Source: Macrostomum lignano (lineage: Eukaryota). Taken from it: 36,246 nt of DNA. Both the position numbers and the translations under genes were made by a program. The stretch is from assembly GCA_002269645.1 (NCBI GenBank), contig NIVC01004748.1, positions 1 through 36,246 of the forward strand, in the 5' to 3' direction. The notes below the pieces were generated by a model, which saw only the letters and a list, made by a program, of their open reading frames with translations, made no database searches and was not told the DNA's origin. Position 1 is the first letter of the stretch. Each line of letters starts with the position of its first letter. Shown in pieces: positions 6,846 to 35,143 of the stretch.

Positions 6846-9800
6846 ATGGTTATCACTGGCTCTGAGATCAAGGCTGGCAGCCTCACATTTCTGTCCAACT
6901 TCGACTCTGGCAATCTCGCCCGGGTGGCCAAGCTCTCCTCCAGAGACGACTCAGATGAGCAGCAGGGCAGTTCGGCCTCATCTGCAGCTGCGCCGCCCCC
7001 GCCGCCGGCGCCAACCTCCCAAGCCGAGGCCAACCGGCCTGACTACGAGTACCAGGTGTGGACTCGCAAAGACGCCGAGGGCTTCCAGTTTGAGAACGAG
7101 AATCGCACCTGGTTTCACTTCGGCGTGCGCGGCTACCAGCCAAACAAGCTCATCAAGCTCACCGTGATGAACCTCAACCGGCAGCAGCGCCTCTTCCAGC
7201 AGGGCCACCAGCCGGTGTTTCGTGTCGGCTTCCCTGACGGCAGCTTCGCCAAGTGGCAGCGTGTCCGCGACCGCTGCTCCTGCGAGACAGTCGACGGCCA
7301 GTTCTACCTGACCTTCACGCACCGGTTCGGCGCCAACGCCAAGGGCTGCACAACTTACTTCGCGTTCTGCTATCCCTGGTCCTACACAGAGTCGCAGGAG
7401 CAGCTGTCCGCGCTGGACTATCGGTTGGTTTAGCAATGATTGCCGCCTTCCAAAGTGGGCTTTCCTTGGGCTACCCTGAGGGGGGGGGCGTAGTCCAGTG
7501 GTCTAGCGCAGCTCAATTCCGAGTGCAGTCACAGTAATTTGAGGCTAAATTGGAATCTCGGCTTGGCTCTGCTCGTGCAATTAACGCCATTGAGGGCCAA
7601 CCCCCAAGGCACAGTGAAGTGTACATGCCTAATGATAAATAAAGTTAGGGCCACTGTACACTCCTGTGTGAGTGTGTGCCTGCGCGTATGACTGCGTACG
7701 TATCCGCGCGCTTGTGTGCCTGCTCAGGGGAGTCGGCGGAATGGGGGCAGCAATGCCTCTCACCGGTTGTGCGACAATGTCGCTTAAAGTGCGCCAGGGT
7801 ACCTCTAATAAAAGAATGAGCTACTCTAGTAGCAAAATTATTGAATTTTTAGCCGATGGCCCAATTTCGAAGACCCCTGGGTTCGATTCCGTGAGTGCGG
7901 CCGTATTAATTTGGGGATGGTGTACGAAAACTTAACACCATAAAAAGCAGCCACGAGGGCCAACCCCAAAGGCACAGAGAGTGTACATGCCTGACGATTA
8001 GTATTGGCGCCTTTAAATAAGAATGTCGTCATGTTGACTATTTCCGAATTAATTTTTTTAGCCTTAATAAGTTCACGCTTGAAAACGTTCAATCTTACAA
8101 AAGTGCATCGAATACATCGCACATATCTTGCTCCCGCTAACTTATCTCGTTCTCAGCTTCCGCCACTGCGCCGCGATGAGGCCGGGCAAGGCTGGACCAG
8201 ACGAGATCTATTACCATAGGGAGCTGCTGTGCCACAGTCTGGACAGGCAGAGGGTGGACCTGCTCACCATCACCGACTGCCACGGCATGACTGACCAGGT
8301 CTGGCTTGCCTGTCTGGCAACTGCTTTTTGATCTCTGCATCCACTAACCATCTCTGCCTGCAGTCCCGATCCTTTAGTCCCGATCCTTCAGTCCCGATCC
8401 TTCAGTCCCGATCCTTCAGTCCCGATCCTGCGGTCCCGATCCTGCAGTCCCGATCCTGCAGTCCCGATCCTGCAGTCCCGATCCTGCAGTCCCGATCCTG
8501 CAGTCCCGATCCTGCAGTCCCGATCCTGCAGTCCCGATCCTGCAGTCCCGATCATTCAGTCCCGATCCTGCAGTCCCGATCCTTCAGTCCCGATCCTTCA
8601 GTCCCGATCCTGCAGTCCCGATCATTCAGTCCCGATCCTGCAGTCCCGATCCTGCAGTCCCGATCCTTCAGTCCCGATCCTTCAGTCCCGATCCTGCGGT
8701 CCCGATCCTGCAGTCCCGATCATTCAGTCCCGATCCTTCAGTCCCGATTCTTCAGTCCCGATCCTTCAGTCCCGATCCTGCAGTCCCGATCATTCAGTCC
8801 GGATCCTTCAGTCCCGATCCTTCAGTCCCGATCCTTCAGTCCCGATCCTGCAGTCCCAATCCTTCAGTCCCGATCCTTCAGTCCCGATCCTTCAGTCCCA
8901 ATCCTTCAGTCCCGATCCTTCAGTCCCGATTCTTCAGTCCCGATTCTGACGTCCCGATTCTGCAGTCCCGATCCTGCAGTCCCGATCCTTCAGTCCCGAT
9001 CCTTCAGTCCCGATCCTTCAGTCCCGATCCTGCAGTCCCGATCATTCAGTCCGGATCCTTCAGTCCCGATCCTTCAGTCCCGATCCTGCAGTCCCGATCC
9101 TGCAGTCCCGATCCTGCAGTCCCGATCCTGCAGTCCCGATCATTCAGTCCGGATCCTTCAGTCCCGATCCTTCAGTCCCGATCCTGCAGTCCCGATCCTT
9201 CAGTCCCGATCCTTCAGTCCCGATCCTGCAGTCCCGATCCTGCAGTCCCGATCCTGCAGTCCCGATCCTGCAGTCCCGATCCTGCAGTCCCGATCCTTCA
9301 GTCCCGATCCTTCAGTCCCGATCCTGCAGTCCCGATCATTCAGTCCGGATCCTTCAGTCCCGATCCTGCAGTCCCGATCCTGCAGTCCCGATCCTTCAGT
9401 CCCGATCCTTCAGTCCCGATCCTGCAGTCCCGATCATTCAGTCCGGATCCTTCAGTCCCGATCCTTCAGTCCCGATCCTGCAGTCCCGATCCTGCAGTCC
9501 CGATCCTTCAGTCCCAATCCTTCAGTCCCGATCCTTCAGTCCCGATCCTTCAGTCCCAATCCTTCAGTCCCGATCCTTCAGTCCCGATTCTTCAGTCCCG
9601 ATTCTTCAGACGACGTCCCGATTCTGCAGTCCCGATCCTGCAGTCCCGATCCTTCAGTCCCAATCCTTCAGTCCCGATCCTTCAGTCCCGATTCTTCAGT
9701 CCCGATTCTGACGTCCCGATTCTGCAGTCCCGATCCTGCAGTCCCGATCCTTCAGTCCCAATCCTTCAGTCCCGATCCTTCAGTCCCGATTCTGCAGTCC

Positions 9801-12800
9801 CGATCCTGCAGTCCCGATTCTTTTCTGATCCCAACGCCGCCTCTGACCGTTCGCAATCCACTCCGTTACCGCCTTCGCCGCAGGAGGAGGACCGCTTCGA
9901 CGAACGCCTCTTTCTGGAGCGCAGCAACCCGCGGCCGCGCGCCTTCCCCGGCAAGCGAGTCTTCCTAGTCAGCAGCCGGGTGCACCCCGGCGAGACTCCG
10001 GCCAGCTTCGTGTTCAACGGTTTCCTAGAATTCATCCTTCGCGAAGCCGACGCCCGAGCCCGCCAGCTGCGCCGCCTGTTCGTGTTCAAGCTCATCCCCA
10101 TGCTCAACCCGGACGGGGTCACCCGGGGTCACTATCGCACCGACAGCCGTGGTGTCAATCTGAACAGATTCTACCTGGACCCCGACCCGCAGCTCTACCC
10201 CACAATCTACGCTGTCAAGAGCGTGCTGGTTTATCACCATCGGGCCAATCGGAAACAGGCTGCGCCTGCTAGGACCTCGGCCGCCTCCGCAGCCTCCGTA
10301 CCCGTCCCGGACAGAACGGCGGCCGAGAATTCCTGTGCAAAATCGGCATCGGCCGAGTCGGCGCCAGAATTAGTTTCCGGCGACACGGAGGACGCTGAGA
10401 GAAACATTCGAGTGAGGTCACTTGGTTGGGATTAGTCTGATGTACTTTTACTGTATACGGGTTGGCATTTCAAAGGCGCGGAGATAAATAATCGTGCGCT
10501 TACTGAATAGGCCGCGCTAATTAAGCGCCTACCGAACAACCGTTTACTGGCTAATAGAGCTCGGAATGAAGTCGCTCATATGTACGGCATGCCTAAACCA
10601 CATCATACCTGCATGCATTTGAGCACATCTAATTTTTTGCCTCTCGCAACAACAAAAAGTAAACCAAGGATCCAACTGAAATCCCACAGTCTCGCAATCG
10701 AGTCATGTCCCTAGTATTCGACGAGACCAAAGGCGAGAACGTCCTGCTACGCGAGGGCTCGCCTCAGATGGCCGCTGCCGATTCACCGATACGCAAGTCG
10801 CCGCTTCCCATAAAAAAACAGTCTGATTTCCGGCCGGGAAACGAGGGTTCCGATTCCGATGGAGATGACCCAGTGAGTGTTCGAGAATCCGTTTTATGAG
10901 TATAGGGTAAGAGACAATGAAGTGATAGGCTATAGACAATGGGTTGGTGACAGACAATAGGTAATGTGGTGGTGACAGGCCATAGACAATGGAGTGGCAG
11001 GGCATAGAAAATGTGGTGGGGACAGGCCATAGACAATCGGGTGGTGACAGGCCATAGACAATCGGGTGGTGACAGGCCATAGACAATCGGGTGGGGACAG
11101 GCTATAGACAATGTGGTGGTGACAGGCCATAGACAATGGGATGGGGACAGGCCATAGACTGTTGTGCGACAGGCAATGGACACTAGGGTGGTTGGTGACA
11201 GGCAATGGACACTAGGGGTGGTGGTGACAGGCAATGGACACTAGGGGTGGTTGGTGACAGGCAATGGACACTAGGGGTGGTGACAGGCAATGGACACTAG
11301 ACAGGCAATGGACACTAGGGGTGGTGACAGGCAATGGACACTAGACAGGCAATGGACACTAGGGGTGGTGGACACTAGGTGACAGGCAATGGACACTAGG
11401 GGTGGTGACAGGCAATGGACACTAGGGGTGGTGACAGGCAATGGACACTAGGGGTGGTGACAGGCAATGGACACTAGGGGTGGTGACAGGCAATGGACAC
11501 TAGGGGTGGTGACAGGCAGGCAATGGACACTAGGGGTGGTGACAGGCAATGGACACTAGGGGTGGTGACAGGCAATGGACACTAGGGGTGATGACAGGCA
11601 ATGGACACTAGGGTGGTGACAGGCTATAGACAATGGGGTCGCAGGCCATAGACAATGTAGGGATGACAGGCCATAGACAATGCAGTTATAGACTATGTTT
11701 AATATGGTCTGAAGCCATAGGCTAAACAAACCACTGTGGCAGCAGCCCTAGCTCAGCTCCGTGCGTGCATCCTTCTCAGGTTCCCGGCGGTCCGGGCTCC
11801 TTTGACCCCGGCAACCCGACCTGTCCGCACCTGTGCGATCCGCGCCTGCTCGAGGTTCCTCCATCGGACAGCGGCATCGCCTACTATATTGACCTGCACG
11901 GCCACTGCTCAAAGCGCGGCTGCTTTGTCTATGGCAACAACGTCGAGCCGGACTCAGCAATGATGGAGAACTTGTTATACCCGCGCCTCATCGCTGCCAA
12001 TTCTGCCTATTTCGAATATTCAGCCTGCAACTTCACCGTGCGCAACATGTACCTGCGGGACAAGCGGGACGGACTGTCAAAAGCTGGCGCTGGCCGGGTG
12101 GCCATTTGGAAGCACCTGGGCCTGGTGCACAGCTACACGCTGGAGTGCAACTACAATAGCGGCAGATGCGTCAATCACCTGCCTATGCATCAGGTGAGGC
12201 ACTGCGATCCCCCCCCCCTGATTTCTGCTCTCTGCTTATTTGTTAGTGGGTTCGCAGGGGGCTGTGGGCACTGTTGCAAATAAAGGCGACGATTGACCCA
12301 CCGCCATTGAAGAGGCAAGCAGTCATACAGAGTGCCCATGCCCCTCTGCTTACTGAATCTGTATATATCAGGGTTCGGGAAACTTCGGCCCGCGAAGCCT
12401 CTTTATCGTCTCGCCTCTCTCTCCTCTCTATCCTTCCCTCCCTCTCTCTCCTCTCCCTTCTCTCATCTCTCCTCTCTCTCCTTTCCTCCCTCTCTCTCCT
12501 CTCCCTTCTCTCATCTCTCCTCTCTCTCCTTTCCTCCCTCTCTCCTCTCTCTCCTTTCCTCCCTCTCTCCTCTCTCTCCTTTCCTCCCTCTCTCCTCTCC
12601 TCTCTCCTTTCCTCCCTCTCTCCTCTCCTCTCTCCTTTCCTCCCTCTCTCCTCTCTCTCCTTTCCTCCCTCTCTCCTCTCCTCTCTCCATTCCTCCCTCT
12701 CTCTCCTCTCTCGCTTCTCTCTCATCTCTCTCCCTTCTTTCCTCTCTTGTCTCTCTCCTCTCTATCCTGTCTCTTCCGTCTCTCCATTCTCTCTCCTCTC

Positions 12801-14071
12801 TTTTCTCTCTCTTCTCTCTTTTCTCTCTCTCTCTCTCTTCTCTTTTCTCCTCTCTTTTCTCTACTCTCCCTTCTCTCCCTTCTCTCTTCTCTCTTCCCTC
12901 CCATCGCTTGTCTCTCCTCTCTCTTTTCCAATCTGCTCTCTCTTCTTTCTCCTCTCCTCTCTCCTCACTCATCTGGCCCGCAGCCCCACAAGCTGGATTC
13001 TTTATATGACTTTTGAGATAAGAAAGTTCGCGGACCTCAGGTACATATGAATCTGCCACCAGAGTGTACATATTCCCTTGACATGAATTGTGCATGCAGT
13101 TGATAAAACCGCAACAAATCGAATCTTTCCAGGATCCCCGACTGACGCCGCCGCCTCCGCCCGGCCCGCCGCCGAAGTACGCGCCGGCTCACTACCAGGA
13201 GGTCGGCCGGGCGATGGCGGTGGCCGCGCTGGACCACGTGCAGTCGAATCCTGTTAGCCGGCTCAGCAAATCCAGTTTAGCCGCCCTGCGCGACTGGACC
13301 CGGCGCTACCTGGCCTCGCTGCGCGGCGGGCCTCGCGCTGTGAAGACTTTTCTAGCCAGCTCGGCTGGCAGCATTGGGCCCAGCCTCCGACAGCAGCAGC
13401 AGCAGCACTTTCGGAGCCGCTCTCAGCAGCAGCAGCAGCAGCAGCAGCAGACGACACCTTCGACATCGTCGTCGGCAACGTCTTCTACAACTGCCGCTGG
13501 CGCGGTGCGTCGAGCTCCGCTGCGTCGTGCGGCGCCTCCACCGCCGACTAACCAGCAGCAGCGGCGCTCAACAACGAATAAAGCCACGGCGGCGGCCGCG
13601 GCAGCGGCGGCACCTCCCCCTCCCTCCCAGGCTGCTCAGCCGCAACAGCAGCCAACTCCAGCTCAGACTCAGCAGCAGCAACAGCAGCCGGTACTGCCAG
13701 GCAGTCTGGAGCAGCAGCAGCAGCCATCGCTGTTCTCACCACGCCAGCAGGCCCTGCTGTCCTCCGTGCCGCCATTGCGCAACCGGCCTTCAGTTGGAGT
13801 TGGCAGCTCGGCCAGTGTGCTGTTGGTCACGGCGGCGGATCTGGAGGAGTCCAAGGTTGCCCAGCTGAGGAGCTGCCTGCAGGCCGAGTCAGTGCCAGTC
13901 CGGCGCAGTGCCTCCATCGGCTGCCTGAAGCCCAACGGACGCGGCGGTGGCGGCGCTGCCGGTTCATCGTCGTCGACGTCTCTGTCGGGGCCGATCGCGG
14001 CAGTCAGCCGCTTCCAGCTAAGGCGGAAGGCCAGCGTGCCGCTCGCCAGGCCGCCAAACCGGCCGGACTGA
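6846..14071 (+). CDS. AGBL5: Cytosolic carboxypeptidase 5 (tubulin deglutamylase, M14 family), about 927 aa, 6 exons
   Basis: Exons 6846-7423, 8157-8298, 9884-10411, 10690-10872, 11780-12193 and 13133-14071 have GT-AG ends and consistent phase (2784 nt in total). Motifs: [68 protein letters not shown] (zinc H/E), [44 protein letters not shown] (zinc H), [10 protein letters not shown] (catalytic E), [12 protein letters not shown]. The ATG has strong context (GCCATGG) and an in-frame stop upstream. Confidence 0.93.
7480..7795 (+). mobile_element. tRNA-derived SINE (family A), internally deleted head
   Basis: A-box-like TAGTCCAGTGGTCTAG, then a body colinear with 34787-35143 and 2683-2940; lies in AGBL5 intron 1. 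Confidence 0.75.
7872..8011 (+). mobile_element. Partial tRNA-derived SINE (family B)
   Basis: GACCCCTGGGTTCGATTCCGTGAGTGCGGCCG..GTGTACATGCCTGACGATTAGTAT matches the 890-1160 element. Confidence 0.55.
8357..9820. repeat. 14-bp minisatellite CAGTCCCGATCCT(G/T), about 104 copies, AGBL5 intron 2
   Basis: Tandem unit seen directly; it explains the 14-aa periodicity (3 units) of ORF 8328..9968. Confidence 0.97.
10925..11690. repeat. About 26-bp minisatellite GTGACAGGCAATGGACACTAGGGGTG with degenerate flanking variants, AGBL5 intron 4
   Basis: Homogeneous core at about 11165-11625, with diverged GACAGGCCATAGACAAT-type units on both sides. Confidence 0.9.
12410..12970. repeat. CT-rich polypyrimidine low-complexity tract, AGBL5 intron 5
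   Basis: Almost purely C/T on the sense strand, with recurring TCCTCTCTCTCCTTTCCTCCCTC blocks. Confidence 0.92.
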
Positions 14072-14807: not shown

Positions 14808-16696
14808 CTTTAGGCTCAGAATTATCATGATATTTTAATTATCAAGTGCACCGTCTGCTCAGATCTCAATTACAGATTTACCTGTAAACTGAAATCCGTC
14901 CATACCTAGCGCGTTTTCATTCCTGCAAACCTATTGATTTTCCTTTAACTCGCCTGCACTTGACTCTTGTTGCACATATCGTTTGGAATTTGGCAACTCA
15001 CCCGTGAGCCTTCCACAAGAACTTGACGCTCTTTTTTGATTTCTCTTTGCACTTTTTTGACACGGTTCGAACCATGTTGGTTTTAGCTTATATAATTGAA
15101 TCGAAATTTTTATCGAGTGGCACCGATTTTCGCTGACAGAGAACCACCAGTCACGTAGAGTTCAATAAAATATTTCAAAATATGTACTCTGCGTTTATCT
15201 CTATTGTTTTTGAACGCACTTTTAAAAAAAGTATACATTTCTACGAGTATATATAGTATTTTGATTTTTTTAAACTCTGTCATTCGACATTTCATTAGCC
15301 AAAGCTACTAATAGTAGAAAAAAATGCGCGTATCGACTGACAATTTCAGTTCAAATTGGCCAGCTACTAATAGTAGATAGAATAATGTCAAAATAAATAA
15401 GAACCGGTAAATTAAGTGAGGTGCTTGCAAAATAGATCCATTCCGTTTATTTCCGAAAAAGAAATTCTTCAATTCGCAAAAAGTATTTGCAAAGAAGAAA
15501 ACATTTTCTGTAGAATTGATAAAAACAATTTAAGAAAACAGCTGGTACAGTTGCTAGGGTTCTCCGCAAAACAGTTGTCGTAAATTTCAAGAATATTAAC
15601 AAATCTTTACGATCTGAAACGGCGCTATCGAATTCCGATTCTGAAATATTAAATTTAAAAAGATAAAAAAATATTCCGATTTCTCGTACAAGGATAAAAA
15701 CGCAATTTATACTACTTGAATTCAGTCAGTAAATAAGTAGTTCACCCGGAGGAAAAACCGGACCAGTCTGGCAAACGCGGCGAATTAACCAATCAGATTT
15801 GAATGCGGAACTGTCACGATTCTCAATTAGAATTTTTACTCAGAAAATAGAGAGTTGCATCAATTGCATAAAAATTGCGTAAGATTGTGCGCCAATTGTA
15901 CTTTTAGTAATCTCTGGAAAAATACCATTTTATTGTGGATAAAAGAATTACGCGAAAAAAGGAAAGTATAAAAGATTTGTGCAGTGGAATACGAGCATAC
16001 AAAAAGCTAGCTAGTGACAGACCATCTAGGAGATGATAAATTAGTCAACTTGTAAACTGTTTTAGTAACTTGTGTTTTTTGACGCATTGTCTAGGCAGAT
16101 TGATTGCTTGCGAATTGCTGTAGGATTTTGCGAAGAGACGCCAGATTTTACCATAGACAAAGGCTGTGAACCAATGAAAACGCAGTTAGATTTGCCATAT
16201 TTATCCAGCAAAACTCTAAGCATGACACTTTGATCCGATTCTTTGGAATGCGAACTTACGAGTTGAGCTCGGACCCAGGGGACAGCTCAGACCAGATCGC
16301 TGCGCCGCTCGCCCCGAGCTCGCTGCGGCGGCGCCTGCTGCTGCTCTCTTGTCGCAGATGCGGCGGCTGCGGCTGAGGTGTTGAAGCTTCCGGTGACCCG
16401 TCGTACACGTAAACAGAGCCGCCGTCACCTTCGGCAGATCTCTGCCGCTCCTGCTCGTTGTCGTCCTCCTGGTTCCAGTTGAATGACACCTTCTTGACGG
16501 CGCCGATTGTCTTCTTGGTGAACGCGGCCGCGGCGGCGTTGGCGGCGGCGGTGTCGGAGTTGGCGGTGCCGGACCGCTGGTAGCCGGGCAGCTGGGCGGG
16601 TCCAGGGCCAGCTCCGCCTGCTGCTGCCGCGTCGCCGCTCCGGCGGGCTGGCCTGGGCCCCGCTGGACTGGAAGCTCTCCGAGCTGTCCTGCGAGC

Positions 16697-19600
16697 TCAG
16701 CGGCGGTAGCCGGCGTCGCGGCGGAGTCGTCGGCGTCCTGGCGCCGGCCTGCCGACCGGCCAGCGGCCAGCCGTTGACGCTGCCGTTGAGACTGTCTGAT
16801 TCCTCCTCGCTGATGGTGTCGAACCGGCCATGCTGCCGCCCTCCTGCTGCTGCTGCTGCTGGTCTTCGCCGCCGGGGAATCGGCCGTAGCGCCGGCTCTG
16901 CATCGACCGCTTGCTGCCGCGGCGCCGCAGCTTGGCTGGGAAGAGTCGCCATGGTGAGTTTTTTTCAACCGACGGGTAATTCATCCCGCACGAGAGCGCA
17001 CACCTGCACAAATACTTTGGCCAGTGCTCCTAAGCTGCACGTTCCGTAAGCTGCGTTTCCTAAGCTGCATGTTCCCTAAGCTTCATGTTCCCTAAGCTGC
17101 ATGTTCCCTAAGCTACATGTTCCCTAAGCTGCATGTTCCCTAAGCTGCATGTTCCCTAAGCTGCATGTTCCCTAAGCTGCATGTTCCCTAAGCTGCATGT
17201 TCCCTAAGCTGCATGTTCCCTAAGCTGCATGTTCCTAAGCTGCATGTTCCTAAGCTGCATGTTCCTAAGCTGCATGTTCCTAAGCTGCATGTTCCTAAGC
17301 TGCATGTTCCTAAGCTGCATGTTCCCTAAGCTACATACATGTTTCCTGAGCTTTATAAGCTTCATGTTGACTGAGATACATTTCCTAAAGTGGCTTTTTG
17401 GTACTAGTGGAATCAAGTCTTACTTTGCACGTGACTGATGTTCCCGGCTTCCCAGCGCCTTACTGTGCTGCATATGCCGTTGGTTCGATCTCCAACAATT
17501 CGTGTCATCTCGTTCTTTGTCGTCCGACTTCTGACGGACCATCAAGTAGCGCTTGATAAGGTCGCGCATCACCGACTGAGGGTTGGGTTAGGATTTCCGT
17601 TTAGTTTTAATGTGGGACGACATCAACAAGCAAACAGGCTTCTTCACCTGGTACCGAGCCTCCTTCTCGTTTACTTTCTTCACCACTTTCTGCAACAGGA
17701 GAGATAAGCCGCTTCTCAATTGCAAACATGATGCAAAATTCACTTAGATAAAATCTTGCAGTCTTACCCGGATGCTCTGCCACTTGCTGCGCTGGTGCCG
17801 CTTAGAGCAGGAGCAGACCTTATCCTTGAGCCAGGCCATCGCGTACAGGAAAGACTTCGGGCTCGGGATGATGTTGAATGGCGTCGGCAGGGTGCCGCCT
17901 TCGTCAAAGTAGCTGATCCACAGCTTGCCGCGGGCGAACTTCCACTCCGTGTCTGCCTGGGCCTGCAGATGTGAAAAATCTGTTTTTTATTTTCTATCGC
18001 CGCTCTACTTTGAGTAGCAGGCACTGAATATTAGAAACGTACCACAATCTCTTCAAAGCTGCAGTTCATCATGGCAATCAACATGTTGAGCAGGACGATG
18101 AATGTTATTGCAGAGAAGGCGCCGTACATGAGCTTGCCTGCGGGAGAGTGACGGCTGAGACTGGCTCTCGGGCTGCTGGGAGAGTGACGGCTGAGACTGC
18201 TTCTCGGCTTGGAGAGTGATGGGTGAGACTGACTCTCGGACTGTGAGAGTGACGGGTGAGACTGACTCTCGGACTGTGAGAGTGACGGTGAGACTGACTC
18301 TCGGGCTGGAGAGTGACGGCTGAGACTGACTCTCGGACTGTGAGAGTGACGGGTGAGACTGACTCTCGGGCTGGGAGAGTGACGGCTGAGACTGACTCTC
18401 GGACTGTGAGAGTGACGGCTGAGACTGACTCTCGGACTGTGAGAGTGACGGGTGAGACTGACTCTCGGACTGTGAGAGTGACGGGTGAGACTGACTCTCG
18501 GACTGTGAGAGTGACGGGTGAGACTGACTCTCGGACTGTGAGAGTGACGGGTGAGACTGACTCTCGGACTGTGAGAGTGACGGGTGAGACTGACTCTCGG
18601 ACTGTGAGAGTGACGGGTGAGACTGACTCTCGGACTGTGAGAGTGACGGCTGAGACTGACTCTCGGACTGTGAGAGTGACGGGTGAGACTGACTCTCGGA
18701 CTGTGAGAGTGACGGGTGAGACTGACTCTCGGACTGTGAGAGTGACGGGTGAGACTGACTCTCGGACTGTGAGAGTGACGGGTGAGACTGACTCTCGGAC
18801 TGTGAGAGTGACGGGTGAGACTGACTCTCGGACTGTGAGAGTGACGGGTGAGACTGACTCTCGGACTGTGAGAGTGACGGGTGAGACTGACTCTCGGGCT
18901 GGGAGAGTGACGGCTGAGACTGACTCTCGGACTGTGAGAGTGACGGGTGAGACTGACTCTCGGACTGTGAGAGTGACGGGTGAGACTGACTCTCGGGCTG
19001 GAGAGTGACGGCTGAGACTGACTCTCGGACTGTGAGAGTGACGGGTGAGACTGACTCTCGGACTGTGAGAGTGACGGGTGAGACTGACTCTCGGACTGTG
19101 AGAGTGACGGGTGAGACTGACTCTCGGACTGTGAGTGAGAGTAAACAATTAAAATATATTCATTTACGCGTCAGAAGATATTTTTAATGGATTTTACCTA
19201 ACTACTTTCCCCCTGAAACGTTATTAATTAATTATGGTGCCAGATGCGAAAATGAAAGTGATAGGAGGCTCTCAACGTTGTCAAATGATGATAAATCAAC
19301 CAGTCCATTAAATAGCCGACCATTACCAATGAATTCCGTGAACGAGTGCTCGTACTCGAGGTCGGTGTTGCTCAAATCTATCAGGCCGTAGGCTGACCAG
19401 TAGAGGGACTGGGTGATCTCAAACAGACTGTGGGGTTTGCAGGTTGCCATTGGTTATCGAGTAAAACGACATAATGGAAAATGTAGGCGGATCTCTGCAG
19501 TACTCAGAGTGCTACAGTTTTATTGTCGTTTGCGCTTCAAACCTACTTGCACTTTACGGTAGAATTCATATGAGATTATATTGGCAGCCTCTGACTTTCT

Positions 19601-22600: not shown

Positions 22601-25600
22601 AAGCAGCTATCGGGTGAGATGTGCATGCACGCACGCGGAACTGAGAGTCGAGTTCCAGTTTCAATATTTGTTTGATTTTGACGAATCGAAGTGAGAGGCG
22701 AAGAATCGGCCATCCAGTATTTAGTTTGACAGCTCCGCCATTCACAATAAAAGTGCACAAGTACTTAATCTCCTCACCTGGACGAAATAAGAGCGTAGGA
22801 TAAAAGCTGCTGCTGAAAGCTTTACTTCTGTAAGCATAGGAACATAACTTAATGCAGATGGCGAATATGCTGGTACCTCCAGCAACGACTATGAGATTGT
22901 CTCCCAATTACCTAATCCGTGATTAATTGCGCTATGGACAGCTAGTCCGCGCCCACGCATGGGCCACTTTTGCTCTGCAAGGAAATTTCTCACTCAGTGA
23001 CAGCAAGGCTTACTGTTGCTTCTCCCAGCCAAAAACCTGGAAACTGACCCGCTCCTGACAACCCGAGATAGCTCGCATTCTCCTTTGGCTTCTTGTTTTA
23101 TAGGCATCAACTGACGAAAACTTGCGACAATTTGCCCAGAGTTATCTTAAATCGATCCACAAAAAACTTTTCCTTGCATAAATAATGTTAGCAAAAATAA
23201 AGCTGCATGTTCCCTAAACTGCATGTTCCCTAAGCTGCATGTTCTCTAAGCTGCATGTTCCCTAAGCTACATGTTCTCTAAGCTGCATGTTCCGTAAGCT
23301 ACATGTTCCCTAAGCTGCATTTTCCCTAAGCTACATGTTCCCTAAGCTACATGTTCCCTAAGCTACATGTTCTCTAAGCTAAATGTTCCGTAAGCTACAT
23401 GTTCCCTAAGCTGCATGTTCCTTAAGCTACATGTTCCCTAAGCTGCATGTTCCCTAAGCTACATGTTCTCTAAGCTAAATTTTCCCTAAGCTGCATGTTC
23501 CCTAAGCTACATGTTCCCTAAGCTACATGTTATCTAAGCTAAATTTTCCCTAAGCTGCATGTTCCCTAAGCTACATGTTCTCTAAGCTACATGTTCCCTA
23601 AGCTGCATGTTCCCTAAGCTACATGTTCTCTAAGCTAAATGTTCCGTAAGCTACATGTTCCCTAAGCTACATGTTCTCTAAGCTGCATGTTCCGTAAGCT
23701 ACATGTTCCGTAAGCTACATGTTCCCTAAGCTACATGTTCTCTAAGCTGCATGTTCCCTAAGCTACATGTTCTCTAAGCTAAATTTTCCCTAAGCTGCAT
23801 GTTCTCTAAGCTAAATGTTCCGTAAGCTACATGTTCCCTAAGCTACATGTTCTCAAAACTACATGTTCCCTAAGCTGCAAGTTTCCCAAGCTGCATGTTT
23901 CCTAAGCTACATGTTCCGTAAGCTACATGTTCCCTAAGCTACATGTTCCCTAAGCTGCATGTTCCCTAAGCTACATGTTCCGTAAGCTACATGTTCTCTA
24001 AGCTATATGTTCCCTAAGCTACATGTTCCCTAAGCTACATGTTTCCTAAGTTACATGCTTCCAAAGCTGCATGCTCCCGGATTTCCTGAGCAGAGGCACT
24101 CACCCTATAATAAGATACTCCTCGCAGTGTGATGGTGGCCACGTACAGAGCATTGGTGATGAAATCCAGCAGGTTCCACATATCAGTCACGTACGCTTTG
24201 ATGCCCTCGCCCCAGAGCTGTTTGATCTCCTGCCAGACAAAGCCTGTGGGTGGCAATTAGCAGAGTTTGATAAGAAAATTTCTGATAGATAAATACAGTA
24301 GGTAGACAGGTGAGAGTGTGGAGAGGTGAGAGAGTAGGCGGAGATGAGTAGACAGGTAAGAGAGTAGACAGGGGAGACAGTAAACAGGTGAGAGTAGATA
24401 GGTGAGAGAATATACAGGTGCATGTGGGCGTTTAAATGATTAGGCATGTATATAAAATCAATGAATGGTAGTAATTCGTAGATGATCAATTGTTAAAGTC
24501 TGGTATTAGGTTGTAAATCACCGCTACATAGCAACCATCATAGCGTGTTACGATTTAGCAGTTAGGAGAGAAGCAATAAAACGATGGCATTTGCTTGCCG
24601 CAACTACGGGAAGCCAAAGGTAGATTATCTTTGAGGCAGGGGCCTCACAGCCGGATATGGGGGAAAGCGAGGCAGTTGGGGGGGGAAATGGGAATTGGAA
24701 TTCGATTCAAATCTGCCACGCCCAGACATGAATGCCAAATTGGGGCCAGCTAGCTCGGGGAGAACCGAGCTTCAATTTAATCCCCCCTCTTTCTCCATCT
24801 GTCTGCCTCAATAGAAGGGAGCGAGAGAGGTGGACAAAAGCGATGTAAGAAAGGAGAGGGAATCTGGGTGTGGTTTTTATGCTTGCCAGCCGGTTTCCCC
24901 GGACGGGCTGGGCGGCCAAAAGAAGCTGCTGAATGCATGCTCGATAGGTTTAATTATCCCTCATTTACTGCCAATGCAATATTGAGTGGCCCTGCCCGGT
25001 TCACCTAATTCCAAGGACTGCTAGATAGCAATCGGTACTAGTGTAGTCCTTGGCCCAGCACGCGATGGATCAAGGCTTATCTACCGATTAAATTACCATC
25101 AGTGCGTTCTATTCTTTCAGAACTACTCTCTACTGTTGTCAGAAAACGTTGTTACAGTCTGCCCCCTTTCCCGGTGTATTTTTATCCTTCATTTAAAACC
25201 CTCCAAAGAATCTGTTTGATTTTTTAACATTCGAAAGTCGCCCCAATTTAAAGTTGCATAATGTAATCTAACCTGTAACACATGTTTATCACTAACTAGC
25301 GTATTAGCCCACATACTAATGTACTCAATTCTTCTTTCGTTATTATTGACAATATTTCTATTGAAATTATGACGCAGACGTGGGCGTTGGCCGCTCCTGC
25401 TTGCTTGGCTAGCAAAGTCCATTCGTAGAGACAAGAGAAAGCTTGGCGTATGGCTTGGCTCGACCACGCCCAACGCTTGTTTGATTGGATTTGCCCCACT
25501 GCTGGATTTTGGATGCATGGACTGAGGGTATAAACTTTTCAAGACTGTCACCATGGGCGACTGAACAGCCGTACGCAGCCTTCAGATGCGCCGCGCAATA

Positions 25601-28600
25601 GCTGCGGCTGAGCTGTCGGTTGCACATCTAGCCATTAGTGCAGGTTTAATCAATTATTTTTATTTATTAAGATCGTCCCACCGCTTTGCTATGACAAGGA
25701 CATAGATCACAATGGTCCATTCCACCATATCTAGATGGCATGGCACAGAGCATCTCACCTAGGACATAGATCACAATGGTCTATTCCACCATATCTAGAT
25801 GGCATGGCACAGAGCATCTCACCTAGGACATAGATCACAATGGTCCATTCCACCATATCTAGATGGCATGGCACAGAGCATCTCACCTAGGACATAGATC
25901 ACAATGGTCTATTCCACCATATCTAGATGGCATGGCACAGAGCATCTCACCTAGGACATAGATCACAATGGTCTATTCCACCATATCTAGATGGCATGGC
26001 ACAGAGCATCTCACCTAGGACATAGATCACAATGGTCCATTCCACCATATCTAGATGGCATGGCACAGAGCATCTCACCTAGGACATAGATCACAATGGT
26101 CTATTCCACCATATCTAGATGGCATGGCACAGAGCATCTCACCTAGGACATAGATCACAATGGTCCATTCCACCATATCTAGATGGCATGGCACAGAGCA
26201 TCTCACCTAGGACATAGATCACAATGGTCCATTCCACCATATCTAGATGGCATGGCACAGAGCATCTCACCTAGGACATAGATCACAATGGTCCATTCCA
26301 CCATATCTAGATGGCATGGCACAGAGCATCTCACCTAGGACATAGATCACAATGGTCCATTCCACCATATCTAGATGGCATGGCACAGAGCATCTCACCT
26401 AGGGCATAGATCACAATGGTCCATTCCACCATATCTAGATGGCATGGCACAGAGCATCTCACCTAGGACATAGATCACAATGGTCCATTCCACCATATCT
26501 AGATGGCATGGCACAGAGCATCTCACCTAGGACATAGATCACAATGGTCCATTCCACCATATCTAGATGGCATGGCACAGAGCATCTCACCTAGGACATA
26601 GATCACAATGGTCCATTCCACCATATCTAGATGGCATGGCACAGAGCATCTCACCTAGGGCATAGATCACAATGGTCCATTCCACCATATCTAGATGGCA
26701 TGGCACAGAGCATCTCACCTAGGACATAGATCACAATGGTCCATTCCACCATATCTAGATGGCATGGCACAGAGCATCTCACCTAGGGCATAGATCACAA
26801 TGGTCCATTCCACCATATCTAGATGGCATGGCACAGAGCATCTCACCTAGGACATAGATCACAATGGTCCATTCCACCATATCTAGATGGCATGGCACAG
26901 AGCATCTCACCTAGGACATAGATCACAATGGTCTATTCCACCATATCTAGATGGCATGGCACAGAGCATCTCACCTAGGACATAGATCACAATGGTCCAT
27001 TCCACCATATCTAGATGGCATGGCACAGAGCATCTCACCTAGGACATAGATCACAATGGTCCATTCCACCATATCTAGATGGCATGGCACAGAGCATCTC
27101 ACCTAGGGCATAGATCACAATGGTCCATTCCACCATATCTAGATGGCATGGCACAGAGCATCTCACCTAGGACATAGATCACAATGGTCTATTCCACCAT
27201 ATCTAGATGGCATGGCACAGAGCATCTCACCTAGGGCATAGATCACAATGGTCCATTCCACCATATCTAGATGGCATGGCACAGAGCATCTCACCTAGGA
27301 CATAGATCACAATGGTCCATTCCACCATATCTAGATGGCATGGCACAGAGCATCTCACCTAGGACATAGATCACAATGGTCCATTCCACCATATCTAGAT
27401 GGCATGGCACAGAGCATCTCACCTAGGACATAGATCACAATGGTCCATTCCACCATATCTAGATGGCATGGCACAGAGCATCTCACCTAGGACATAGATC
27501 ACAATGGTCTATTCCACTATATCTAGATGGCATGGCACAGAGCATCTCACCTAGGACATAGATCACAATGGTCCATTCCACCATATCTAGATGGCATGGC
27601 ACAGAGCATCTCACCTAGGACATAGATCACAATGGTCCATTCCACCATATCTAGATGGCATGGCACAGAGCATCTCACCTAGGGCATAGATCACAATGGT
27701 CCATTCCACCATATCTAGATGGCATGGCACAGAGCATCTCACCTAGGACATAGATCACAATGGTCCATTCCACCATATCTAGATGGCATGGCACAGAGCA
27801 TCTCACCTAGGGCATAGATCACAATGGTCCATTCCACCATATCTAGATGGCATGGCACAGAGCATCTCACCTAGGACATAGATCACAATGGTCCATTCCA
27901 CCATATCTAGATGGCATGGCACAGAGCATCTCACCTAGGGCATAGATCACAATGGTCCATTCCACCATATCTAGATGGCATGGCACAGAGCATCTCACCT
28001 AGGACATAGATCACAATGGTCCATTCCACCATATCTAGATGGCATGGCACAGAGCATCTCACCTAGGGCATAGATCACAATGGTCCATTCCACCATATCT
28101 AGATGGCATGGCACAGAGCATCTCACCTAGGACATAGATCACAATGGTCCATTCCACCATATCTAGATGGCATGGCACAGAGCATCTCACCTAGGACATA
28201 GATCTCAATGGTCCATTCCACCATATCTAGATGGCATGGCACAGAGCATCTCACCTAGGACATAGATCACAATGGTCCATTCCACCATATCTAGATGGCA
28301 TGGCACAGAGCATCTCACCTAGGACATAGATCACAATGGTCCATTCCACCATATCTAGATGGCATGGCACAGAGCATCTCACCTAGGATATAGATCACAA
28401 TGATCCATTCTACAATGCTCGGCGCACCGCCTCTCTCCTGCATTTTCTCCTCCAGGGTGTCCATGATGAGATCTTCAACCCGGATGGCAGCCAGCACCAG
28501 AAAGCCGAGGAATAACATGTAGGAGGCGCTGTGGCAGATAAATTTAATAAACGGCTTTCGCATCTTCTGTCCCAGTTCCGATCGAGGCGCCACCAGGTAG

Positions 28601-31600
28601 ACCATTGACAGCAGCGGGAAAATCCCGGCAAAGGTGCCAATCATGCCCATTTGAAAGAACATGTGCTTCCGACGGAAACCGGGTAGGCCTTCGTACCAGA
28701 GTGCGGCTAGCAACTGCTGACAGTGCGGATGGGCCACAAACTGAGGGGTGCAATTAAAAAAGCACTTGGATAATTCTTTCTGCTATGAAGTTTCATCTAT
28801 ACGCTCAACTGAGCTTGATTCCAACAAAGACTGCGTAAAGACCAGAGACAGAAACGGGACGGAACGGGACGGAACGGGACGGAACGGGACGGAACGGGAC
28901 GGAACGGGACGGAACGGGACGGAACGGGACGGAACGGGACGGAACGGGACGGAACGGGACGGAACGGGACGGAACGGGACGGAACGGGACGGAACGGGAC
29001 GGAACGGGACGGAACGGGACGGAACGGGACGGAACGGGACGGAACGGGACGGAACGGGACGGAACGGGACGGAACGGGACGGAACGGGACGGAACGGGAC
29101 GGAACGGGACGGAACGGGACGGAACGGGACGGAACGGGACGGAACGGGACGGAACGGGACGGAACGGGACGGAACGGGACGGAACGGGACGGAACGGGAC
29201 GGAACGGGACGGAACGGGACGGAACGGGACGGAACGGGACGGAACGGGACGGAACGGGACGGAACGGGACGGAACGGGACGGAACGGGACGGAACGGGAC
29301 GGAACGGGACGGAACGGGACGGAACGGGACGGAACGGGACGGAACGGGACGGAACGGGACGGAACGGGACGGAACGGGACGGAACGGGACGGAACGGGAC
29401 GGAACGGGACGGAACGGGACGGAACGGGACGGAACGGGACGGAACGGGACGGAACGGGACGGAACGGGACGGAACGGGACGGAACGGGACGGAACGGGAC
29501 GGAACGGGACGGAACGGGACGGAACGGGACGGAACGGGACGGAACGGGACGGAACGGGACGGAACGGGACGGAACGGGACGGAACGGGACGGAACGGGAC
29601 GGAACGGGACGGAACGGGACGGAACGGGACGGAACGGGACGGAACGGGACGGAACGGGACGGAACGGGACGGAACGGGACGGAACGGGACGGAACGGGAC
29701 GGAACGGGACGGAACGGGACGGAACGGGACGGAACGGGACGGAACGGGACGGAACGGGACGGAACGGGACGGAACGGGACGGAACGGGACGGAACGGGAC
29801 GGAACGGGACGGAACGGGACGGAACGGGACGGAACGGGACGGAACGGGACGGAACGGGACGGAACGGGACGGAACGGGACGGAACGGGACGGAACGGGAC
29901 GGAACGGGACGGAACGGGACGGAACGGGACGGAACGGGACGGAACGGGACGGAACGGGACGGAACGGGACGGAACGGGACGGAACGGGACGGAACGGGAC
30001 GGAACGGGACGGAACGGGACGGAACGGGACGGAACGGGACGGAACGGGACGGAACGGGACGGAACGGGACGGAACGGGACGGAACGGGACGGAACGGGAC
30101 GGAACGGGACGGAACGGGACGGAACGGGACGGAACGGGACGGAACGGGACGGAACGGGACGGAACGGGACGGAACGGGACGGAACGGGACGGAACGGGAC
30201 GGAACGGGACGGAACGGGACGGAACGGGACGGAACGGGACGGAACGGGACGGAACGGGACGGAACGGGACGGAACGGGACGGAACGGGACGGAACGGGAC
30301 GGAACGGGACGGAACGGGACGGAACGGGACGGAACGGGACGGAACGGGACGGAACGGGACGGAACGGGACGGAACGGGACGGAACGGGACGGAACGGGAC
30401 GGAACGGGACGGAACGGGACGGAACGGGACGGAACGGGACGGAACGGGACGGAACGGGACGGAACGGGACGGAACGGGACGGAACGGGACGGAACGGGAC
30501 GGAACGGGACGGAACGGGACGGAACGGGACGGAACGGGACGGAACGGGACGGAACGGGACAGCGTCGAACTAACCTTCTTCTGCTTGTACTTGATGGCCA
30601 TCTTGAGTCGGGACAAGTTCATCCTCTCACCCTCCGTAAGGGTTTTGTCGTTGAGCTTTGCGTTGCCCTGTCCGGCGTCCTGGTTAAGCACGATGGCCAG
30701 CTCCTCGGAACTGCGAGTCTGCTCCAGCAGAGCCGTGGCAAACTTCTGACAATCGGCCGACAGGTTCTCGTACTCCTCGCGGAACTCGTGCTCGAGCCGG
30801 CCGAGTCGGTGCATCTCCCAGCTGAGCTCGAAGGCTGTCAGAATCGGATCCTTGCTAGACAGGGCAATCAGCGACGGGCTGGCCAGGGCTTTGTAGGCGT
30901 TGATGCGCGATTTCGAGTGCTGCAGACTGTCCTCCTTGTGCGCCCTGACGCAGTCGACGCAAGCGCAGCGCAGTTCGTGCGGCTTGGGTACGCGGTCGCC
31001 GCGATCCAGCAGCAGCTTGATGATCTCGTAGTTATCGATCTGGGCGGCCAGGATGATCGGCGTGACGTCCGGCGTGAAACTGCTGGACGGTGTTGTGCCG
31101 AGGAGGCCCTGCGGTTAGAGGATCGGAGGCTGTTGGTGGTTTCATGGACAGGTCAACTGAATTAAAAGACGCTAGCTCGCAGATATTGTGAATTTTGCTG
31201 TAGGCCGATTTTCACGGTGAAATGCATCAACTTAAAAATATATAAAATAATAATTGATTATAACTGCCCTAATGGTCAGATTTGTAACCGACAGCTCAGC
31301 CGCAGCTATTGCGCGGCGCATCTGAAGGCTGCGTACGGCTGTTCAGTCCAAGGACTAGGGGGGGGGGGGGGGGCGGCGTCGCCACACACACCCTCAGTTA
31401 CCCCAGCTAATGCTGGCACCCATTTTACAGCTGGGTGAAGTGAAGCAATGCAGAGTTAAGTGCCGTGATCAAGGACACAAATTGCTCCTGGTGAGTCGAG
31501 AATCGAACCCCGACCTTTCAGTCGTGAGTCCGACGCTCTAACCACCAGGCTACAACCCCATATCTTAAGATAAGATGATTGAAGATTTTTAGCACTAAAC

Positions 31601-34786: not shown

Positions 34787-35143
34787 GGGGGGGGCTAAGC
34801 TCAGTGGTCTAGCGCGGCGCTTTGATGTGCCAGCGGCCCAGGCTCGATTCCAAGTGCAGTCACATTAATTTGGGACTAAATTGGAATCTCGGCTTGGAAT
34901 TGTTCATGCTACAATTAATGCTCTCAAGAGCTAACCCCAAGGCACAGTGAAGTGTACATGCCTAACGATAAATAAAGTTAGGGCCGCTGTACACTCCTGT
35001 GTGAATGTGTGCCTGTGCGTATGACTGCGTACGTATCCGCACGCTTGTGTGCCTGCTCAGGGGAGTCGGCGGAATGGGCAGTAATGCCTCTCGCCGGTTG
35101 TGTGACAATGTCGCTTAAAGTGCTCCAATGTGAACACAGCCCC
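34787..35143 (+). mobile_element. tRNA-derived SINE (family A), most complete copy
   Basis: A-box AGCTCAGTGGTCTAG and B-box-like GGCTCGATTCC, then a body colinear with 7480-7795 and 2683-2940. Confidence 0.8.

Follow-up and report, generated by a model that had tools for sequence, protein, structure and literature searches.

Several human genes are known in which an intronic minisatellite reiterates a donor splice site. Intron 7 of the human F7 gene contains a 37-bp minisatellite of 5-9 units, the first monomer of which lies over the boundary between exon 7 and the following intervening sequence (IVS7) (Borensztajn et al. 2006, PMC1557585). The pseudo-sites of F7 are intrinsically functional, but normally only the most upstream donor is used (PMC1557585). 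The same study describes 25 pseudo-donors in intron 2 of IFI6 (6-16), 15-20 repeats in IVS13 of CBS, 10-15 copies of a 100-bp unit in LMNB2, and 16-18 copies of an 81-bp unit in intron 4 of PDGF. The authentic donor alone is used in F7, LMNB2 and PDGFA, and the two nearest pseudo-sites are used too in IFI6 and CBS (PMC1557585). Here we analysed a stretch of 36,246 nucleotides from Macrostomum lignano (assembly GCA_002269645.1, contig NIVC01004748.1, positions 1 to 36,246 of the forward strand; the whole stretch is hereafter called the window), in which a 64-bp tandem array starts within exon 3 of a gene for a TRPC-type cation channel and extends far into intron 3. As in IFI6, CBS, LMNB2 and PDGF, many intronic donors are thus reiterated from a minisatellite that begins in an exon.

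Tandem Repeats Finder reported one array on the minus strand, with a period of 64, 42.4 copies, 98% matches, 0 indels and a score of 5288, which begins 28 nt within exon 3 and occupies 65% of intron 3. Parsing of the minus strand resolved 42 units at a spacing of exactly 64 nt, from 28382 down to 25695, each with 28 nt of the form GTGAG..CTAG followed by an in-frame piece of 36 nt, phase 1-1, which encodes 12 residues and then (G). An earlier note on this DNA, made from the letters alone, had proposed this division into a 28-nt GT..AG segment and a symmetric 36-nt piece, and the 42 parsed units bear it out. The 28-nt piece, GTGAGATGCTCTGTGCCATGCCATCTAG, is identical in 42/42 units, where 0 matches are expected by chance, and CCTAG/GTGAGATGC (the slash marks a splice junction or its copy) is present 42 times, as one authentic donor and 41 pseudo-donors of identical sequence. 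The same note had every unit ending in YAG/GTGAG; this holds for 41 of the 42 units, and only the last departs from it, since unit 42 ends in CCTTG, followed by TCATAG, and has neither a terminal AG nor a donor after it. A 40-nt piece of the 64-bp unit gave 0 matches in a metagenome scan. The parts of the array are as follows.

25697..28410, minus strand: the 64-bp minisatellite, as delimited by Tandem Repeats Finder.
28377..28385, minus strand: authentic donor of intron 3, TAG/GTGAGA (exon -3 to intron +6), equal to the 41 pseudo-donors.
25759..28318, minus strand: units 2-41, with a pseudo-donor at each start (sequence parse).
28318, 28254 ... 25758, minus strand: the 41 pseudo-donors, the last being the start of unit 42 (sequence parse).
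27550-27487, minus strand: unit 14, stop-bearing (sequence parse).
25695..25758, minus strand: unit 42, the degenerate last copy (sequence parse).

We compared the unit with the end of exon 3. As a result, the exon tail proved identical to the unit end at 26/28 positions over the last 28 nt and at 30/36 over the last 36 nt, whereas similarity to the unit vanishes upstream of this tail, and the sequence past unit 42 is unrelated (8/64). The match to the exon tail, together with the loss of similarity beyond it, identifies the unit as a joint copy of the tail of exon 3 and the opening 28 nt of the intron, with the exon 3/intron 3 junction lying inside the first unit. A variant of this origin, in which the array replaces the exon tail instead of adding to it, was ruled out, since exon position -36 lacks a GT. 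The same figures support two statements of the earlier note, namely that the unit is repeat-born and that the 36-nt piece nearly duplicates part of a transmembrane helix, which we take, from TRPC topology, to be half of helix S2. The regularities of the array follow from this origin. Each unit starts with GTGAG because it was copied from an authentic donor, the 36-nt piece ends in phase 1 because this phase was inherited from exon 3, YAG/GTGAG recurs at the unit borders because the junction itself was copied, and the in-frame start with its preceding AG reflects where the break-points of the duplication fell. The in-frame parse into 28 and 36 nt has a probability of coincidence of ~2%, from ~1/3 for an exonic length divisible by 3 and ~1/16 for an intron head that ends in AG; this ~2% is to be set against the very many such arrays in the genome, while the repeat itself is far beyond chance.

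The locus thus shows the three structural features of the F7-IVS7 type: a tandem array in an intron with a period in the minisatellite range (10-100 bp), a first monomer that spans the junction, and identical pseudo-donors. As in F7, the first unit holds the exon-intron junction and identical pseudo-donors follow the authentic donor; the F7 unit, however, includes 4 exonic nt, whereas the present array comprises 42 x 64 bp with ~36 exonic nt per unit, and each unit here, unlike that of F7, also resembles an in-frame micro-exon between AG and GT. The 41 pseudo-donors are more than any number given in PMC1557585. The array therefore belongs to the known F7-IVS7 class, from whose other members it differs in scale, in its long exonic part and in its host lineage.

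The gene that hosts the array, identified by tblastn of homologues, lies on the minus strand and encodes a canonical TRP (TRPC/TRP-gamma-like) channel, with homology to TRPC proteins spanning TRP_2, S1-S6, the pore and the TRP box. In an exhaustive search of representatives, its top-scoring relative was Clonorchis sinensis TRP-gamma (55% identity), and the next TRPC relatives were likewise from flatworms (Cichlidogyrus, Protopolystoma and Anoplocephala). No protein above ~61% identity turned up in the word-index and exhaustive representative searches, neither of which is sure to catch a close relative, and the exact look-up of one open reading frame of the window gave no match. The exons of the channel gene measure 42-550 nt, and the tblastn boundaries agree with exons 3 and 4 and with the phase of intron 3 as the earlier note gave them. 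The gene model is as follows, all on the minus strand.

End at 33938: exon 1 (tblastn model).
31108-30575: exon 2 (tblastn model).
28740-28383: exon 3, 358 nt, ending in phase 1 (tblastn of TRPC homologues).
24244..25694: remainder of intron 3 outside the array, with the acceptor CCACCCACAG/ at 24244.
24243-24104: exon 4, 140 nt, starting with GCTTTGTC, peptide (G)...SYYR, the partner of the authentic donor (tblastn model).
21327-20954: exon 5 (tblastn model).
19427-19327: exon 6 (tblastn model).
18137-18043: exon 7, with more small exons downstream (tblastn model).
Introns 1-6: 2829, 1834, 4139, 2776, 1526 and 1189 nt.
Introns 7-9, array-free: 80, 78 and 72 nt (78 and 72 counted by hand).

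A true small exon is present in the downstream part of the gene, at ~17641-17682 on the minus strand. It measures 42 nt (14 residues), lies between the 78- and 72-nt introns and aligns to Clonorchis TRP-gamma residues ~820-840, and it may serve as a model of what a real small exon looks like here.

When the first donor is joined to the acceptor at 24244, the product is colinear with the TRPC homologues in tblastn. The spliced product of exons 3-5 matched the solved structures of TRP-gamma (9vqq, E = 4e-89), TRPC5 (5e-80) and TRPC4, and its alignment to all three is free of gaps at the exon 3/4 junction. Furthermore, 67 homologues span this junction, and the spacing from the P..E motif to the G..W.E.K motif is identical in 55 of the 58 that match the pattern. 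An open, homologue-colinear product is obtained from the first donor only, and extension of exon 3 to any pseudo-donor leads to a premature stop. In the Clonorchis sinensis orthologue, the intron shares its codon position and phase with intron 3, its donor reads TACGTCTTAG/GTGAGG (TTAG/GTGAGG), and its 364 nt contain no junction array. Since Clonorchis thus shares the intron without the array, the donor is old, and the array was added recently. The Clonorchis intron does contain 1.9 copies of a 56-bp unit (16455-16563), mid-intron and clear of the donor, as a small independent duplication.

On this evidence, we consider it likely that the array is an intronic, junction-spanning minisatellite, which arose as a by-product of duplication, and that the first donor gives the productive mRNA. 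A 64-bp segment over the exon 3/intron 3 boundary, with ~36 nt from the exon end and 28 nt from the intron start, would have been amplified in tandem, presumably through replication slippage or unequal exchange. Each copy would thereby have brought with it a pseudo-exon tail and an exact copy of the donor, leaving 41 pseudo-donors to trail the authentic one at intervals of 64 nt. The most upstream donor (28383/28382) would be joined to the acceptor at 24244, with the entire array leaving as intron, and the array would have no coding role and cause at most low-level unproductive splicing. That the first donor is the one used is suggested by the human precedents and by the otherwise intact gene.

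The variation among the units bears directly on whether the 36-nt pieces could be exons. The consensus 36-nt piece is found in 24 units. GTC>GCC (V>A) occurs in 9 units (5, 7, 9, 11, 18, 20, 25, 27 and 31), with an alternating run that spans 28126..27679; TGG>TAG introduces a stop in 7/42 units (14, 19, 23, 36, 38, 39 and 41); and GTG>GAG (V>E) is confined to unit 3. Unit 14 carries a second change, ATG>ATA, besides its TAG. Our recount of 7, 9 and 1 matches the seven TAG, about nine V>A and one V>E of the earlier note, which had also placed the alternating V>A units correctly, at about 27680-28070. The variable sites (n = 5) all belong to the 36-nt piece, and the 28-nt piece has 0 (P = 0.056 under a uniform distribution). 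Of the five, four are nonsynonymous or nonsense, and the fifth abolishes the AG of its unit. The units thus show no coding constraint.

These data speak to the idea of a cassette-exon library, put forward in the earlier note, in which one or a few 36-nt pieces would be included between exons 3 and 4 and would bring 12-residue V/A/E variants into S2. The piece is of phase 1-1 and bounded by AG and GT, and a single inclusion would leave the frame open in 35/42 units. However, 7/42 units contain stops, the stop-free units encode only 3 distinct peptides, and variation is confined to the "exon" piece, with the "intron" piece unchanged throughout, a pattern opposite to coding constraint. A 12-residue insert at the exon 3/4 junction was seen in none of the homologues and structures examined, and it would duplicate half of helix S2, if S2 is correctly assigned from TRPC topology. 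A search with a chimeric query that contained two inserted units gave no relative above 60% identity, and the peptide of the 36-nt piece was found in 0/368 retrieved proteins, a weak negative, as neither this species nor a close relative is represented among them. Moreover, an included piece would carry an identical donor that again faces identical acceptors. Such chained inclusion would run into a stop at unit 14 if every piece were kept and after 6-9 pieces if alternate ones were kept, that is, after 6-13 inserts overall, and unit 42 has no donor after it. The internal acceptors are TAG, whereas CAG stands at 13/13 acceptors of the window that could be placed with confidence. Flatworms do splice microintrons (PMC6530080), and the cassette reading, if true, would give the junctions exon 3/ATATGGTGG and GTCCTAG/GCTTTGTC; we nevertheless regard it as very improbable, and the claim of a cassette-exon library is not upheld by the stops, the lack of coding constraint, the homologues without an insert or the fate of chained inclusion.

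The comparison with schistosome micro-exon genes (MEGs), also drawn in the earlier note, does not hold either, apart from symmetric length. MEGs encode secreted proteins and consist mostly of micro-exons with long introns between them (bioRxiv 10.1101/2023.06.21.545858). The pieces described here are symmetric and of up to 36 nt, as in MEGs, but they lie 28 nt apart, without long introns between them, in a gene for a multi-pass TRPC channel with ordinary exons, which is not secreted and falls outside the definition of a micro-exon gene. The array is most likely a harmless by-product and not a store of spare mini-exons.

The earlier note had also judged the 28-nt spacing as probably too short for adjacent use, and this stands only in part. 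On the one hand, 28 nt is far below the minimum seen among the local array-free introns of 72, 78 and 80 nt, a comparison with three short introns only. On the other hand, the microintron modes of flatworms are ~32 and 58 nt in Gyrodactylus (PMC4040987) and 37 and 90 nt in Opisthorchis, where the microintrons often have no polypyrimidine tract (PMC6530080). Although 28 nt is below the reported modes of 32-37 nt, it would not be absurd in a flatworm, and the argument from size is not decisive; with flatworm microintron peaks at 32-37 nt, we dropped the view that 28 nt is categorically too short. A stronger argument is functional, in that efficient splicing of the 28-nt pieces would destroy the channel mRNA, while the other exons are intact and conserved. 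No yUnAy branch-site consensus is present in the unit.

Several observations weigh against an inert minisatellite that is spliced out from the first donor. The nearest relatives of the channel belong to the flatworms that splice microintrons of 32-37 nt, and the size argument is weaker there (PMC4040987, PMC6530080). The pyrimidine fraction before the internal AGs, 0.65-0.71, is like that of the real acceptors here and does not discriminate between them. The pseudo-donors are strong, with 7 consensus positions in a row, and do not differ from the authentic donor, and the array might act as a U1-binding or regulatory element.

The strength of the pseudo-donors raises the possibility that they are leaky, such that some transcripts use the second or third donor, gain 64n nt and, as frameshifted mRNA with stops, are degraded, with the array acting as a mild sink or as a damper that depends on copy number. 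In line with this, the pseudo-donors match the authentic donor exactly, every extension of exon 3 brings a premature stop, and the two nearest pseudo-sites are used in human precedents (PMC1557585). However, the pseudo-sites of F7 are silent unless the first site is mutated (PMC1557585), no regulatory signal was found here, and the folding of exon tail and units as RNA is unremarkable (z = -1.73, not significant). We consider such leakage improbable.

The abutting acceptor-like and donor-like motifs at the unit borders suggest another route, in which each CCTAG/GTGAG would serve as an acceptor and then as a donor, so that the array would be removed in 64- or 64n-nt steps, each of them restoring the exon 3/GTGAG junction, and the mRNA would remain unchanged. 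Indeed, AG/GTGAG ends 41 units, and 64 nt is near the local introns of 72-80 nt and the long microintron modes of flatworms, 58-90 nt (PMC4040987, PMC6530080). Human transcripts do make use of dual-specific AGGT sites, with an enrichment in tandem-repeat genes such as UBC (PMC10809524), and this route would be harmless, so that selection would not purge it. Compared with the ratchet motif (Y)nNYAG/GTRAGT, the array offers AG/GTGAGA in 41 units, with an upstream pyrimidine fraction of 0.65 and a TAG acceptor. Ratchet points have strong polypyrimidine tracts. The unit borders are like the ratchet points of Drosophila in that acceptor and donor motifs abut as YAG/GTGAG; the latter, however, are single conserved sites in introns mostly >40 kb, whereas intron 3, at only 4139 nt (4.1 kb), contains 41 recent identical copies (PMC6110457). 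The borders also resemble the dual-specific AGGT sites of UBC, as they read AG/GT and whole units could be spliced out, but the UBC units are coding ubiquitin monomers with observed isoforms, whereas the units here are intronic and carry stops (PMC10809524). Furthermore, the acceptor signals are weak, with TAG in place of the CAG of the 13/13 real acceptors and a unit that contains no yUnAy, and the duplication of a donor preceded by ...CCTAG accounts for the arrangement without recursion. Stepwise removal by this route is therefore unlikely in our view. Equally doubtful is its extension, in which, given a flatworm-like spliceosome capable of microintrons, the 41 junctions would work as a natural multi-step ratchet with intron-defined steps of 64 nt, and occasional in-frame capture of a 36-nt piece would give S2-insert variants.

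The reading of the array as a junction-spanning minisatellite fits the state of the surrounding introns. Tandem arrays (periods 9-72) account for 30.9% of the window. They are present, at least one each, in all long introns of the TRPC gene and the neighbouring CCP5/AGBL5-like gene and absent from the short ones. The introns appear to be inflated mainly by these arrays, the array-free ones measuring 72-80 nt. The other arrays that touch the TRPC gene include the following.

18138-19135, minus strand: 33-bp array in intron 6, ~30 units, 95% matches, ending exactly at the exon 7 acceptor.
28853-30560: 10-bp array in intron 2, AACGGGACGG on the plus strand and CCGTCCCGTT in the transcript, 171 copies, 100% identity.
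24302-24420, minus strand: small 16/30-bp array in intron 3.

The last unit of the 33-bp array provides the exon 7 acceptor, CACTCTCCCGCAG/, and ~24 upstream units contain the pseudo-acceptor CACTCTCACAG in the same register, so that the intron 6 array is the mirror image of the donor-reiterating array in intron 3. The 10-bp array starts 15 nt past the donor 30575/30574 and fills almost all of intron 2; it is either very recent or a simplification of the assembly. In intron 4, a 16-bp array starts 26 nt into the intron. The occurrence of arrays at or near splice sites in several introns speaks for a mutational process that acts generally on introns which were once short, and not for a design specific to exon 3.

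Since tandem arrays are error-prone in assembly, and the 10-bp array nearby reaches 100% identity across its 171 copies, the copy number of the 64-bp array, or the array itself, might have come from mis-assembled repeats. We find this scarcely credible, because the variants are ordered, with alternating V/A units in the proximal part and TAG units in the distal part, the flanks on both sides of the array are unique and clean, and a conserved exon anchors the first, junction-spanning unit.

Besides the tandem arrays, the window contains dispersed repeats. A 110-bp repeat is present at 25559-25668 (intron 3) and, inverted and 91% identical, at 31237-31348 (intron 1). Between the distal end of the 64-bp array and the copy in intron 3 there are 30 nt, and base-pairing of the two inverted copies over exons 2 and 3 is conceivable in the pre-mRNA. 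A further dispersed element of ~230-290 bp occurs in 3 copies that are 84-89% identical (2675-2905, 7511-7796 and 34842-35127) and is possibly like a short interspersed element (SINE); tRNA and Rfam scans of the window, this element included, gave no match at the gathering thresholds. The CCP5/AGBL5-like gene (cytosolic carboxypeptidase-like 5) lies at 6846-14071 on the plus strand, opposite to the TRPC gene. Exon identity to bird CCP5 is ~50%, and the best match, at 61%, was to an unnamed Logan transcript (DRR639838). Stretches of poly-Q, poly-A and poly-P abound in the C-terminal exon, and each intron is dominated by one array.

As such, the array is what repeat instability ordinarily produces. 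It should be annotated as an intronic minisatellite and not as exons, as gene predictors could easily mis-call the 36-nt pieces. At the same time, the locus is a natural test case, in which 41 perfect copies trail one authentic donor and, elsewhere in the gene, ~24 close look-alikes precede an acceptor, and it bears on whether the "first site wins" rule, known from F7 in mammalian cells, holds in a distant invertebrate lineage. If the 41 junctions did work as a ratchet, the locus, with the acceptor-reiterating 33-bp array of intron 6 included, would be a natural experiment on the choice of donors and acceptors among dozens of identical sites. More generally, duplication of an exon-intron junction can make ready in-frame pseudo-exons, which would be raw material that evolution could occasionally recruit.

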